From sequence record PV654397.1: DNA of 64,000 nt, one strand, 5' to 3'. The position numbers and the translations under genes are program-made. Positions 24,523 to 28,915 of the stretch are shown in pieces; the first letter of the stretch is position 1; each line of letters starts with the position of its first letter. The notes below the pieces were generated by a model. The model saw only the letters and a program-made list of their open reading frames with translations, was not told the origin of the DNA and ran no database searches.

Positions 24523-25065
24523 TTATTGTCGTTCATCATCATGAATCTCACGATGACAATTTGCACAAACCATAATACATTTATCCAGTTCTATTTTAAT
24601 TTTTTCAAAAGAACGAGTTGCACCTTCTTGACTAATTGAATAATCTTTCTGTGAAGGATCAACATGATGGAATTCTAATGCGGCAATGCATTTATCATAT
24701 CCACACTTTTCACAACAACCGCCTTTGTATTCAACGGCTAGTATTTTTAATTTTCTACGTCTATCAGAAACACGTTGACTGTCACATTTTAAACATTTCC
24801 ATTTACCTTGTGAATTTAATTCATAATTCTTATTGTGTATTTCACAAAATCGCATTTCATTGGTTGATTTTGGTCGTTTAACACCATGTGATTCAACGAT
24901 ATCATTTATTCTTGATCTATTACACTTATATTCTTTGGCTAAACCGTAAATTGGCATACCATTTAAATATTTTTGAATTATTTCATTCTCTGGTAATTTA
25001 GAACTTTTAGCCTTTAATGATTCAGCTATTTTTTTACGTGTTTCTTCTGATTGTTTTCGTCCCAT
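24523..25065 (-). CDS. HNH homing endonuclease with NUMOD3-like N-terminus
   Basis: MGRKQSEETRKKIAESLK; YKGGCCEKCGY...LEFHHVDP...ELDKCIMVCANCHREIH. Confidence 0.85.
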   Translation of the reverse strand: MGRKQSEETRKKIAESLKAKSSKLPENEIIQKYLNGMPIYGLAKEYKCNRSRINDIVESHGVKRPKSTNEMRFCEIHNKNYELNSQGKWKCLKCDSQRVSDRRRKLKILAVEYKGGCCEKCGYDKCIAALEFHHVDPSQKDYSISQEGATRSFEKIKIELDKCIMVCANCHREIHDDERQ

Positions 25066-25121: not shown

Positions 25122-25130
25122 ATTGTTTTG

Positions 25131-25214
25131 CTGGTAGTACTGGAGTCGAACCAGTCTTGTCATTTCTGACACGGATTAACAGTCCGTTGCATAAGGCCGA
25201 TATGCTAACTACCA
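25131..25214 (-). tRNA. trnN: tRNA-Asn(GUU) with long variable arm, no encoded CCA
   Basis: acceptor TGGTAGT/ACTACCA, G73; ACGGA-CTGTTAA-TCCGT; variable stem GTCA-GAAA-TGAC; ACTGG-TTCGACT-CCAGT. Confidence 0.85.
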
Positions 25215-25305: not shown

Positions 25306-25314
25306 GAATTTTGA

Positions 25315-25558
<244 letters not shown>

Positions 25559-25574
25559 ATATCAATACTTAATA

Positions 25575-25952
<378 letters not shown>

Positions 25953-25967
25953 ATCACCAACTTTAAT

Positions 25968-26310
25968 TAAAAAAAATGGATGGTGACGCTTTTAAACGCC
26001 GCTGTTAATTCAGCTTTATAACCACCCGTTTTAACTTGCCTTTCGGCTACCTTGACGTGGGGCGTACAGGCTACTAAAAGCAACTACTGTAAACATATTT
26101 CCACGCCTTACCCTTTTAAATAAAAATCCATCCGGTTTTCCAGTTTGGTGAAGGATAGTCACCTCTAGTTTAAACCTGCTAGTCAAGTAATAATTGCCTA
26201 TCGTCCAATTATCAAACCCGTCTAGGTTAACATTCACCACTTCCTAGAGTACCAGAGATCTTGTTCTGGATTGCATCGACGTAACTTACACCATATACGT
26301 CTGATTGTGG
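25968..26310 (-). ncRNA. stand-alone structured non-coding RNA candidate (~340 nt)
   Basis: own consensus promoter upstream, GC stem plus T8 at 3' end, at least 8 helices, GCC-GAAA-GGC loop; G-U pairs favour - strand. Confidence 0.65.
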
Positions 26311-26315
26311 AATTC

Positions 26316-26340
26316 ATTATATCAGTACTGAACTATTTAG

Positions 26341-26344
<4 letters not shown>
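26316..26344 (-). promoter_or_regulatory. sigma70-type promoter with CAGTACTG in spacer
   Basis: TTGACT-aaatagttcagtactga(17)-TATAAT. Confidence 0.8.
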
Positions 26345-26936
<592 letters not shown>

Positions 26937-26940
<4 letters not shown>

Positions 26941-27097
26941 ATTCGTACCAGTAGTTCAATTAAGTACATTTCATATGCTGGATCGTTGATAAGTTTATCA
27001 TACAGATGTGGCTCTGAAATGAATTCCCAATGATACTTTAGCCATTTACCGATACCCGAATATCTAAAATTAATGTCATTCATCCATTCTTCATGTG

Positions 27098-27101
<4 letters not shown>
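26937..27101 (-). CDS. MTHEEW-family small protein (54 aa)
   Basis: MTHEEWMNDINFRYSGIGKWLKYHWEFISEPHLYDKLINDPAYEMYLIELLVRI. Confidence 0.75.
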
Positions 27102-27262
<161 letters not shown>

Positions 27263-27279: not shown

Positions 27280-27365
<86 letters not shown>

Positions 27366-27832: not shown

Positions 27833-28123
27833 TTATGATTCGGTTTCGGGATTAAATTTTATAAATTCATCTTTATGTTCATCTTCAATCGCAATATCTT
27901 CTACGTGTTCAGGCCAGATTGTGGTGTCCCCTTGGTAGAAGCGATAGTTATCGAATTCTGCACTACGTGTTCTTCCCTGTTCCCAACCAATAGTACAGTC
28001 ATGATATACATCACCACTACGTGTACGAATGCTTATTGAGTCTTGTGTTTCATAAAGAACGTCAATGCGTGTGTTACGATTTGTATTGAATTTTTCAAAA
28101 TGCATAGTAATCCCCAATAACAA
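27833..28123 (-). CDS. hypothetical protein
   Basis: ORF; true start probably MHFEK. Confidence 0.65.
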   Translation of the reverse strand: MLLGITMHFEKFNTNRNTRIDVLYETQDSISIRTRSGDVYHDCTIGWEQGRTRSAEFDNYRFYQGDTTIWPEHVEDIAIEDEHKDEFIKFNPETES

Positions 28124-28126
28124 TTG

Positions 28127-28345
28127 TTATTCTTGTGGTTTAGTTACACCAACACCAATAATACTTTTAATATCAATATGGATATTAGCAAGTTCATTAC
28201 TGTCAAACGGGTTAGTTTCAGTTACAACAACAGTGGTGTCATTAACTAAAACTACTGAACCTTTTACACGGTATCCCTGAAGGAGTACTTGTACATTGTC
28301 GCCAGCGTTTAATGAGTTAATAACTTCTAATAGAGTAGATTCCAT
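28127..28345 (-). CDS. hypothetical protein
   Basis: 72 aa, AGGA SD. Confidence 0.75.
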   Translation of the reverse strand: MESTLLEVINSLNAGDNVQVLLQGYRVKGSVVLVNDTTVVVTETNPFDSNELANIHIDIKSIIGVGVTKPQE

Positions 28346-28355
28346 TTTATTTTCC

Positions 28356-28553
28356 TTACGGTTTACTATTTTTACGTTTTTCTGATTCGGGTATAGTTTT
28401 CATTTCACCAATACATAGTTCCATGATGAGCACACCTTTGTCATTATAACGTACTACATCTTCAATGTCAAAATGTCTCGCACTATGAACAACTTCAATA
28501 CATGCATCATCGGGATATGATTCCAATAATGCTACAAGTTCTGCTTTAGTCAC
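28356..28553 (-). CDS. hypothetical protein
   Basis: 65 aa, GAGG SD. Confidence 0.7.
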   Translation of the reverse strand: MTKAELVALLESYPDDACIEVVHSARHFDIEDVVRYNDKGVLIMELCIGEMKTIPESEKRKNSKP

Positions 28554-28566
28554 TTTGGATTCCTCG

Positions 28567-28915
<349 letters not shown>

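Follow-up and report, generated by a model that had tools for sequence, protein, structure and literature searches.

An unannotated stretch lies between the tRNA genes of an E. coli jumbo phage, and the question that it raises is whether it encodes a small protein, a single structured RNA or something else. The stretch (positions 25,968 to 26,344) is part of the 64,000-nt DNA from sequence record PV654397.1, which was analysed as a whole and is called the window here. The window is from an Asteriusvirus (121Q/PBECO4-like) jumbo phage and is 100% identical to phage WPEC5 over the locus. A preliminary description, made from the sequence alone, had claimed that a consensus promoter is followed by about 340 nt of structured RNA ending in a GC-rich branched stem plus T8, that the only ORF (69 aa) is incidental, and that the locus is an undescribed phage ncRNA gene. 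We confirmed what had been observed in the sequence. The interpretation was only partly supported, because the comparative data argue against a single RNA gene.

A structured, non-coding locus on the minus strand

Initially, we examined the elements on the minus strand (Table 1). The promoter is near-consensus, scores 11/12 and occurs once in the window. The 343-nt minus strand folds better than shuffled sequences (z = -2.40), whereas the plus strand does not (z = -0.96). Four helices of the preliminary description, CCAGA/UCUGG (26252-69), CUAGG/CCUAG (26222-47), AUAAUUG/CAAUUAU (26190-212) and GGUGA/UCACC (26147-63), are exactly where they had been placed and are kept by compensatory changes in other phages. 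UACAG/CUGUA and the GCC-GAAA-GGC hairpin are also present and are conserved in RaK2; 121Q has GCC/GGU in the latter. However, two further pairings require comment. GGCGU/ACGCC competes with CGUGG/CCACG, which the energy minimum prefers, and a Kuravirus homologue is compatible with both. The proposed long-range CUUGAC/GUCAAG pairing is not supported: ACUUG pairs locally with CAGGU with covariation, a promoter separates the two halves in RaK2, and most homologues lack the second half altogether.

Table 1. Coordinates of the elements at the locus (all on the minus strand).
Element	Positions	Description
Sigma-70-type promoter	26316..26344	-35 TTGACT (26344-26339), 17-nt spacer, TG-extended -10 TATAAT (26321-26316); predicted start about 26310-26308, at the first pseudoknot strand (inferred, not measured)
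Module A	26125..26310	~186-nt non-coding RNA, eight hairpins and three pseudoknots
Module A, 5' domain	26221..26310	PK1 to P4
PK1	26310-26307 / 26240-26237	5'-CCAC with GUGG in the loop of P4
P2	26305-26297 / 26282-26275	AUC-A-GACGU / ACGUC-GAU; conserved loop motif YGGYGUA
P3	26269-26265 / 26256-26252	CCAGA/UCUGG
P4	26248-26243 / 26226-26221	UCUAGG/CCUAGA
Module A, 3' domain	26125..26220	junction to PK3
Junction	26220-26213	CGGGNUUG
P5	26213-26206 / 26196-26189	invariant GACGAUA in the loop (26205-26199)
P6	26188-26184 / 26178-26174	ACUUG/CAGGU
PK2	26182-26179 / 26168-26165	loop CUAG with CUAG; H-type with an A-rich third loop
P7	26163-26159 / 26151-26147	GGUGA/UCACC
PK3	26157-26153 / 26129-26125	loop UAUCC with the 3'-terminal GGAUU
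P8	26143-26140 / 26135-26132	CUGG/CCGG
Module B	26054..26107	long interrupted hairpin; outer stem GGCGUGG/CCACGUC (or alternatively GGCGU/ACGCC), middle stem UACAG/CUGUA (26091-26087 / 26069-26065), apical stem GUUGCU/AGUAGC
Tetraloop hairpin	26038..26047	GCC-GAAA-GGC, between Modules B and C
Module C	25969..26027	three-way junction; outer stem GGGUGGU/ACCAUCC (26027-26021 / 25984-25978), hairpins GCUG/CAGC and GGCGU/GCGUC, then U8 (25976-25969); likely intrinsic terminator of the unit
69-aa ORF	26031..26240	GTG start; not a gene

Translation and conservation of the 69-aa ORF, without conservation of the stems, had been put forward in advance as the outcome that would count against a non-coding RNA. 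We compared the ORF among homologues. It is annotated as a hypothetical protein in WPEC5, and a different 27-aa ORF is annotated in 121Q. However, the 69-aa ORF carries stops or frameshifts in 8 of 10 homologues, namely RaK2, Pm5461, PM2, Mm5, KP13-16, Aeromonas phage 65 and two metagenomic copies. Its GTG start lies inside a conserved hairpin loop, no frame on either strand is open in all lineages, and substitutions are compensatory in the helices. Thus, a small protein gene is already refuted by the comparative data.

Modules and the conserved fold of Module A

We next tested whether the ~340 nt behave as one unit. They do not: the comparative data show at least two or three independently inherited units, and the locus is a cassette of small non-coding RNA genes. 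Module A alone recurs, in unannotated gaps between tRNA genes. It was found in T4-like phages of Proteus, Morganella and Aeromonas, T5-like Proteus phages, a Stephanstirmvirinae Klebsiella phage and RaK2-like jumbo phages; homologues occur in six phage lineages. Copies 82-97% identical occur in jumbo myoviruses (Asteriusvirus, Alcyoneusvirus), T4-like Bragavirus and T5-like Novosibvirus, and copies about 56% identical occur in a Stephanstirmvirinae phage and in Aeromonas T4-like phages. In all of these, it lies in tRNA clusters and in the tRNA orientation. In Pm5461, PM2, Mm5 and Proteus phage 1, homology is confined to the ~190-nt gap between tRNAs. In KP13-16, AP1, avDM6 and L087 (a locus from a metagenome scan), Module A starts 2-5 nt after a tRNA CCA; such a start was seen in five lineages. 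No flanking protein is shared between lineages. Thus, Module A is an independent, horizontally exchanged gene.

Modules B and C are separate add-ons, a hairpin RNA and a three-way-junction terminator. They have their own promoter in RaK2, and in the metagenomic locus L028 they are replaced by a different RNA cassette. Module B (fold z = -2.8) is found in 121Q-like and RaK2-like phages, and a 54-nt match in Kuraviruses carries compensatory changes in the outer stem, although few independent sequences are available. In Module C, 98.8% of cells pair and 5 of 16 pairs have compensatory changes, but only 5 sequences were compared. A second copy of Module C lies upstream of Module A in RaK2.

Covariation across related phages had also been named beforehand as a check on the structure. 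To perform this, we used an alignment of Module A (A3) and a covariance model (R1), which scores the copy in the window at 235.8 bits. Over 59 pairs, 96.5% of 1006 cells pair, against 27-41% when partners are slid, and 31 of the 59 pairs show changes on both sides. No shuffle out of 500 reaches the observed values. In the 5' domain (helices 1-4), 100% of cells pair and 2/4, 6/10, 3/6 and 7/8 pairs covary. This half was fitted by hand to the proposed structure, whereas the 3' half was aligned by Infernal. In the 3' domain (helices 5-10), PK2 covaries at 2/4 pairs and PK3 at 3/5. All three pseudoknots covary; P8 is weak, with 83.6% pairing and no covariation. It should be mentioned that the sequences form three deep clades plus sub-clades, so the independent events are far fewer than the cell counts. 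The first four nucleotides pair into the loop of P4 and the last five into the loop of P7, and both termini are therefore buried in structure. About 55 positions are invariant across clades that are only 56% identical. Many of these are unpaired: GACGAUA in the P5 loop, CGGG.U.G in the junction and GU in the P2 loop. These invariant positions speak for a specific tertiary fold or binding surface.

Other pairings examined by eye were not retained. A long-range GGUUUG/CAAACU pairing is broken in RaK2, Mm5, Proteus phage 1, KP13-16 and the Aeromonas copies, and pairing of the P2 loop GGUGU with UCACC shows no covariation. Anticodon-loop mimicry by P7 or by the apex of Module B fails, because the loops vary or do not fit a 5-bp stem with a 7-nt loop. 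A CsrA-sponge role through GGA motifs also fails: the conserved element is GACGAUA, not GGA, and the GGA of the tail is paired in PK3.

We also looked for more members of the family. Pattern scans of IMG/VR returned only the already sequenced isolates. A metagenome scan returned four close copies, L087, and L060 as a doubtful fragment at a contig end. A GTDB scan returned nothing real (best hit, 14.5 bits). The covariance model was applied to individual loci rather than to whole databases. Among 5,426 E. coli genomes and 72,556 plasmids (PLSDB), there was no match; Module A is not a copy of a host RNA. The sister phage Sharanji, which was isolated on K-12 MG1655, carries a clean deletion: it keeps the promoter plus ~36 nt and has lost the rest, and four more Asteriusviruses give the same hit pattern. 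Module A is thus dispensable on K-12.

Comparison with described RNAs

An Infernal search of Rfam had been suggested as a check. Against Rfam 15 (4227 models, including tRNA, tmRNA, RNase P, 6S, riboswitches, ribozymes and GOLLD/ROOL), only tRNAs were found in the window at gathering thresholds. In 25500-26800 at E<=10, nothing was better than E=4.4 and Module A had no hit. Only tRNA-clan hits appeared in seven homologous loci. ARAGORN and the Rfam tRNA-clan models found nothing in 25968-26344; Module A has no GUUCRANYC T-loop and no CCA end. No RNase P model matches, and the 5' and 3' ends pair into the P4 and P7 loops, not with each other. Public records leave the locus blank or call it a hypothetical protein, and sequence and keyword searches of the literature found nothing. 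Thus, the RNA is undescribed as far as we could test.

Stable non-tRNA RNAs in phage tRNA clusters have been known since the 1970s, and none has a function. The analogy with those of T4 and T5, drawn in the preliminary description, is apt as a category, but homology was not found. T4 rnaC and rnaD (species 1 and 2) are non-coding, stable and dispensable in the laboratory, and, like Module A, they lie inside a tRNA cluster, in the tRNA orientation and directly abutting tRNAs; a stable processed transcript is a further feature of the T4 RNAs, and no RNA-seq or northern data for the phages that carry Module A were found. R1 gave no hit on the T4 tRNA region with default filters, and with filters off the best score was 11 bits, elsewhere in the locus. 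rnaC and rnaD are shorter (139 and 119 nt) and from their sequence partly tRNA-like: rnaC has a GGUUCGAAUCC T-arm and rnaD ends in CCA. The T5 stable RNAs (rnaI, rnaIII, rnaIV, rna1, rna2, rna2H, rna3 and rnaX) are annotated as stable RNAs with unknown functions, in a tRNA region rich in HNH endonucleases. R1 with filters off over T5 27.5-42 kb gave a best score of 12.4 bits, in an AT-rich stretch, and BLAST found no T5 match, although the T5-like genus Novosibvirus carries Module A.

PA5oct, a jumbo phage related to 121Q and RaK2, has two ORF-less loci, ncRNA001 and ncRNA002, which were shown by RNA-seq to give 2-5% of phage reads (PMC7318152). This is a precedent that such phages express abundant stand-alone ncRNAs. 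However, these loci lie in the terminal repeat, not in a tRNA cluster, and R1 with filters off gave only noise on them and on the Kuravirus gap. GOLLD and ROOL are large, highly structured RNAs of unknown function, frequently next to tRNA genes in phages and prophages. They are 3-4 times longer than Module A and occur in other bacterial groups. A cryo-EM preprint is also available (10.1101/2024.12.08.627333).

Phage RNA decoys against defence, such as pseudo-ToxI of phage PhiTE and RNA anti-CRISPRs, are small structured RNAs that neutralise a host defence protein. The analogy is functional only: those RNAs mimic a host or defence RNA and are repeats. Type III antitoxins consist of tandem ~34-45-nt repeats, each folding into a pseudoknot; reviews of type III toxin-antitoxin systems were found in the literature search. 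Module A has no tandem repeats and no E. coli or plasmid counterpart, and its only similarity to ToxI (sequence from PMC5772629) is the hexamer AGGUGA, which is here the 5' strand of the covarying P7 helix.

Inferred biogenesis and function

The non-coding, modular and pseudoknotted character of Module A and its spread between phage families are what the analysis itself shows, and we hold this identity with high confidence. The transcript ends and the route of biogenesis are inferred from sequence context only, the latter with moderate confidence, and the function is a tentative inference; taken together, the explanation has moderate confidence. In this phage, Module A would be transcribed early by host RNA polymerase from its own strong promoter, starting at PK1, and transcription would run through Modules B and C to the U8 terminator. 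No expression, end-mapping or binding data exist. In T4-like and T5-like phages, it would be co-transcribed with tRNAs and released by the tRNA-processing nucleases, by a cut in the 2-5-nt A/U spacer after the upstream CCA and by RNase P at the downstream tRNA. Exonucleases would then be stopped by the terminal pseudoknots.

The function of Module A is not known. Our best guess, at low confidence, is that the mature RNA accumulates as a stable, trans-acting accessory RNA, which binds and titrates or redirects a host protein. The most plausible target is an RNA- or tRNA-directed enzyme or defence nuclease, and in this view the RNA would complement the neighbouring phage tRNAs in host take-over or counter-defence. 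However, no partner protein is indicated, no gene co-occurs with the RNA across lineages, and the decoy idea rests only on analogy, on the early promoter and on accessory status. The complexity and the conserved unpaired nucleotides would fit a ribozyme or a ligand-binding RNA equally well.

A self-processing ribozyme, which would cleave at or near its own 5' end and thereby free the 3' end of the upstream tRNA and release itself, is unlikely in our view. In favour of it are the start shortly after a tRNA CCA, the multi-pseudoknot architecture with a paired 5' end and the many invariant unpaired nucleotides; small HDV-like "theta" ribozymes are reported to act in this way downstream of phage tRNAs. 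However, no ribozyme family of Rfam matches even at E<=10, and the topology (5' strand into the loop of the third hairpin) is not that of HDV-like or hatchet ribozymes. Catalysis was not assayed, and these observations leave membership of the HDV-like or hatchet ribozymes undecided. In Asteriusvirus, in L028 and probably in RaK2, the RNA begins at a promoter, so there is nothing to cleave off. Furthermore, at 186 nt it is far larger than self-cleaving motifs used for trimming.

An RNA subunit or scaffold of a phage-encoded ribonucleoprotein, for example in tRNA repair, modification or processing, is also doubtful, although slightly less so. The large rigid fold with conserved unpaired nucleotides and the constant location among tRNA genes would fit. 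The carriers are all large virulent phages with many RNA-metabolism genes, and the Morganella phage cluster carries a "cyclic-phosphate processing" protein. However, no protein gene is shared in the neighbourhoods of the six lineages, where the only cross-lineage hit is an HNH endonuclease. Movement between unrelated phage families as a bare ~190-nt cassette is hard to reconcile with dependence on a phage-specific partner, unless the partner is widespread.

A purely cis-acting element, a structured spacer which would stabilise tRNA-cluster transcripts or organise their processing and have no function once released, is similarly unlikely. It would fit the position between tRNAs and structured ends that would block exonucleases. 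However, in the window, in 121Q and in L028, Module A is a stand-alone transcription unit with its own promoter and is not adjacent to a tRNA. Sequence conservation (82-97% across unrelated families, with invariant loops) far exceeds what a spacer needs, and the Sharanji deletion leaves the downstream tRNAs intact.

A riboswitch-like or attenuator leader, in which the promoter, structured RNA and terminator would control read-through into the downstream ORF and tRNAs, is very unlikely. In the window, the U8 terminator is followed 16 nt later by the start of a 125-aa ORF and then by three tRNAs (tRNA-Ser/Met/Asn), Module B has two mutually exclusive outer pairings, and GGGUGGU in Module C resembles the T-box motif. 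However, the T-box and all riboswitch models of Rfam give no match. Module A occurs without any terminator or ORF in most lineages, where it is followed directly by a tRNA and Module C is absent, and RaK2 has a promoter between Modules A and B.

A bolder possibility, which we regard as tentative, is that Module A founds a new class of complex functional RNA, either a decoy that disarms a host tRNA- or RNA-directed defence enzyme or a new ribozyme, which travels as a bare cassette between the tRNA islands of unrelated virulent phages (jumbo myoviruses, T4-like, T5-like and phi92-like). The tRNA islands of these phages would then be more generally arrays of promoter-ncRNA cassettes that current annotation misses. 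If the RNA proves to be a counter-defence decoy or a ribozyme, it would add an RNA-based layer to phage-host conflict around tRNAs. Because the family has a well-supported and unusually intricate fold, a cross-family distribution that implies selection and horizontal transfer, its own strong early promoter, and natural deletion variants in otherwise near-identical phages that grow on E. coli K-12, it makes the old question of stable RNAs in phage tRNA clusters testable.

The locus is currently blank or mislabelled as a hypothetical protein in about 90 public phage genomes, and jumbo-phage tRNA islands appear to hold several more unannotated RNA cassettes. In the window, we checked the region 28100-28640, which has two perfect promoters, as another possible RNA gene; it is filled by short ORFs. 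The promoter cassette of Module A is duplicated in 121Q, and the same cassette drives tRNA-Gly in the sister phage BAU.Micro_ELP-22.

Architecture of the locus and distribution of its modules

The window comes from an Asteriusvirus, a 121Q/PBECO4-like E. coli jumbo phage. Over the locus it is 100% identical to phage WPEC5 and 97-99% identical to about 30 relatives. Initially, we tested whether the elements named in the preliminary description, a promoter followed by about 340 nt of structured RNA that ends in a branched stem and a T-tract, are present. On the minus strand, the TTGACT-17-TATAAT promoter scores 11/12, has an extended -10 TG and is unique in the window. It is followed by about 340 nt of sequence and by the branched stem GGGUGGU/ACCAUCC with U8. 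The minus strand folds better than its shuffles (z = -2.40), whereas the plus strand does not (z = -0.96). ARAGORN and Rfam find tRNA-Ser, tRNA-Met and tRNA-Asn just downstream and further tRNAs on both sides, but nothing inside the locus. Thus, the observation itself is real. The coordinates of the features are collected in the table.

Table. Coordinates of the features in the window and in the loci compared with it
Feature	Sequence	Coordinates	Strand
Promoter TTGACT-17-TATAAT with extended -10 TG	window	26344-26316	minus
Module A	window	26310-26125	minus
69-aa GTG ORF	window	26240-26031	minus
Module B	window	26107-26054	minus
Module C (followed by U8)	window	26027-25978	minus
U8	window	25976-25969	minus
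HNH endonuclease ORF, 180 aa	window	24523-25065	minus
tRNA-Asn, 85 nt	window	25130-25214	minus
Spacer between tRNA-Ser and tRNA-Met, 154 nt	window	25306-25459	minus
Three tandem paralogous 54-aa ORFs	window	26776-27262	minus
Weak tRNA (Rfam only)	window	27287-27365	minus
Deletion locus; corresponds to window about 26344-26275, then about 25965	phage Sharanji (L151)	910-975	
Reused promoter cassette	phage BAU.Micro_ELP-22 (L150)	307-419 and 615-725	
Reused promoter cassette	121Q (L002)	1575-1690	
tRNA, unannotated in the record	RaK2 (L003)	1258-1330	
Unannotated structured stretch	RaK2 (L003)	1335-1496	
Second promoter, unrelated RNA and third promoter	metagenome contig JACCDR011713278.1 (L028)	about 560-790	minus
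Gap without annotated genes	Kuravirus XT18 (L011)	1014-1802	
Module-B-like hairpin	Kuravirus XT18 (L011)	1501-1560	
tRNA-like remnant	KP13-16 (L008)	1631-1680	
tRNA-like remnant	metagenomic contig L087	about 225-290	minus

BLAST against 50,697 phage records showed that only the 5' ~190 nt of the locus (module A) is widely conserved. Module A occurs alone in T4-like Bragavirus (Proteus phages Pm5461 and PM2 and Morganella phage Mm5, at 90-93% identity), in T5-like Novosibvirus (Proteus phages 1, 2 and M4H10_20, at 84.5%), in Klebsiella phage KP13-16 (Stephanstirmvirinae, at 72% over the core) and in about 20 Aeromonas Emmerichvirinae phages. In each of these records, the match fills an unannotated gap in a tRNA cluster, in the tRNA orientation. 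For example, in Pm5461 it fills exactly the gap between tRNA-Gly and tRNA-Asp. In PM2, Proteus phage 1, KP13-16, the metagenomic contig L087, AP1 and avDM6, it begins 2-5 A/U-rich nucleotides after the CCA of a tRNA. In KP13-16 and L087, a tRNA-like remnant (a T-arm and an ACCA end) that is not called as a tRNA lies directly after module A.

In contrast, modules B and C are found only in 121Q-like and RaK2-like phages, apart from a 54-nt match of module B in Kuraviruses. Two further observations show that modules B and C are separate from module A. RaK2 and a metagenomic relative place a TG-extended promoter between modules A and B. In another relative (metagenome contig L028), module A is under its own promoter and is followed by a second strong promoter, an unrelated ~165-nt RNA closed by a 14-bp hairpin stem (GGUGAGUAACAUUG/CAAUGUUACUCACC), and then a third promoter. 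This arrangement looks like an array of promoter-ncRNA cassettes. Therefore, the 340-nt "gene" proposed in the preliminary description is a string of separately inherited RNA cassettes.

The 69-aa GTG ORF is annotated as a hypothetical protein in WPEC5. We compared this ORF among the homologues. The ORF is hit by stops or frameshifts in RaK2, Pm5461, PM2, Mm5, KP13-16, Aeromonas phage 65 and two metagenomic copies. Moreover, no frame on either strand stays open across lineages. The locus is not protein-coding, and we consider a small protein gene extremely unlikely.

Predicted fold of module A and structures of modules B and C

Covariation across related phages had also been suggested as a test of the RNA. 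To perform it, we built a covariance model (R1) from ten sequences and used it to collect and align 19 copies of module A. The 3' half aligned unambiguously. However, the 5' half of the two divergent clades had to be aligned by hand, helix by helix, and the counts for that half therefore lean towards the structure. The resulting alignment (A3) contains 59 pairs in 10 helices, and 96.5% of cells form a standard pair. When the 3' partners were slid by 1-3 columns, this value was 27-41%. Thirty-one pairs have changes on both sides, and 0 of 500 column shuffles reached the observed values. It should be mentioned that the independent evidence comes from three deep clades plus sub-clades, not from 19 separate lineages. 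About 55 columns are invariant across clades that share only ~56% identity, and many of these columns are unpaired.

The fold from 5' to 3' is as follows. In PK1, 5'-CCAC pairs with GUGG in the loop of P4, and the variants are CCUC/GAGG and GCAC/GUGC. P2 is a hairpin of up to 10 bp with the conserved loop motif YGGYGUA, and P3 is a hairpin with a variable loop. In P4, 7 of the 8 pairs covary. The junction CGGGNUUG is followed by P5, which has the invariant GACGAUA in its loop. P6 and PK2 form an H-type pseudoknot, in which loop CUAG pairs with a downstream CUAG (variants CUGG/CCAG and CAAG/CUUG) and the third loop is A-rich. In P7 and PK3, loop UAUCC pairs with the 3'-terminal GGAUU, and the variants are AGUCC/GGACU, ACCC/GGGU and GCCC/GGGC. 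P8 is a weak mini-hairpin. Thus, both RNA ends are locked in pseudoknots. The long-range CUUGAC/GUCAAG helix of the preliminary description is not supported: ACUUG belongs to the covarying P6, and most homologues have no partner sequence.

Module B is a long interrupted hairpin (fold z = -2.8). Its outer stem has two mutually exclusive registers, and both are compatible with the Kuravirus copy, which carries compensatory changes. A GCC-GAAA-GGC hairpin follows module B. Module C is a three-way junction: across five copies, 98.8% of cells pair and 5 of 16 pairs show compensatory changes. In RaK2, an unannotated structured stretch between a tRNA and module A ends in a second copy of the module C three-way junction, just upstream of module A. 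Its DNA reads TTGACA-17-TATTAT, which would start transcription at the 5' end of module A. Few sequences support this point. In Kuravirus XT18, the module-B-like hairpin lies in a ~790-nt gap and is followed by GGACGAUA and CAGAUGGA, two motifs that are also conserved in module A.

Relationship to other RNAs, dispensability and possible function

A search against Rfam had been named as a further check of whether the RNA is undescribed. Apart from tRNAs, no Rfam 15 family matches the window or seven homologous loci. Model R1, with filters off, finds nothing in the T4 tRNA region with rnaC/rnaD, in the T5 tRNA region with its eight annotated stable RNAs, in the PA5oct ncRNA loci or in the Kuravirus gap. 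There is no copy in 5,426 complete E. coli genomes or 72,556 plasmids, and module A is therefore not a captured or mimicked host RNA at the sequence level. Pattern scans of IMG/VR, JGI/ENA metagenomes and GTDB genomes, filtered with R1, added only four close copies and one KP13-16-like copy. The family is rare and, so far, confined to virulent phages of Enterobacterales and Aeromonas. Literature searches by keyword and by sequence string found no description, although the motif could still be among the 10,006 unnamed candidates of PMC10690425, which were not examined. The closest known RNAs are the T4 and T5 tRNA-cluster stable RNAs, which share the genomic niche and the unknown function, but module A is not homologous to them. 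Thus, the interpretation as an undescribed phage ncRNA is partly supported: it is right in kind but wrong in the unit. We regard module A as a new family among such tRNA-cluster RNAs, with a fold complex enough to deserve experimental study.

Copies of module A in Asteriusvirus, Alcyoneusvirus, Bragavirus and Novosibvirus are 82-97% identical. The homology stops at the ends of the RNA, and no neighboring protein is shared. This indicates recent horizontal transfer of the bare cassette. HNH homing endonucleases sit in these tRNA islands. In the window, an HNH endonuclease ORF next to the tRNAs is 54% identical over 95 aa to an HNH gene in the tRNA region of Aeromonas phage ZPAH1, which also carries module A. 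This offers a plausible vehicle for cassette transfer, but it is inference only.

Phage Sharanji, an Asteriusvirus isolated on K-12 MG1655, has a natural ~310-bp deletion. It retains the promoter and the first ~36 nt of module A and then runs straight into the downstream ORF, and the rest of module A and modules B and C are gone. Four other Asteriusviruses (phages G17, phAPEC6, EC22.5-2 and ECO103 4-12-1) give the same BLAST pattern. Therefore, the locus is dispensable on a laboratory host, as accessory host-interaction genes usually are.

Our analysis shows that module A is a conserved, non-coding, triple-pseudoknotted RNA gene that lives in phage tRNA islands and moves between phage families. 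Its biogenesis, in contrast, is inferred. Transcription would be early and by host RNA polymerase. The near-consensus promoter is of the same cassette that drives tRNA-Gly in a sister phage. In T4-like and T5-like phages, the RNA would be co-transcribed with tRNAs and released by tRNA-processing nucleases, and the pseudoknotted ends would protect the mature RNA. As to function, we tentatively propose that module A is a stable trans-acting RNA that binds a host RNA- or tRNA-directed protein as part of take-over or counter-defence. The sequence data, without experiments, do not choose between this idea and its alternatives. A subunit of a phage ribonucleoprotein seems unlikely, a self-processing ribozyme and a purely cis-acting processing spacer seem somewhat less likely still, and an attenuator leader seems very unlikely.

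Other features of the tRNA islands

The promoter cassette TTGACTAAATA(A/G)TTCAGTACTG..TATAAT is reused in phage BAU.Micro_ELP-22 and in 121Q. One copy drives a tRNA-Gly gene, and degenerate copies and an intact copy precede module A. A small ORF and the 70-nt insert seen in many 121Q-like phages lie between the copies. The three tandem paralogous ORFs (MTHEEWM...) just upstream of the locus in the window are also present in 121Q and Sharanji. Among the tRNAs of the window, a weak tRNA is seen by Rfam (32.6 bits) but not by ARAGORN, and the tRNA-Asn has an unusually long extra arm. Where the window has a 154-nt spacer between tRNA-Ser and tRNA-Met, 121Q has 7 nt. The layout of the tRNA island differs between close relatives.
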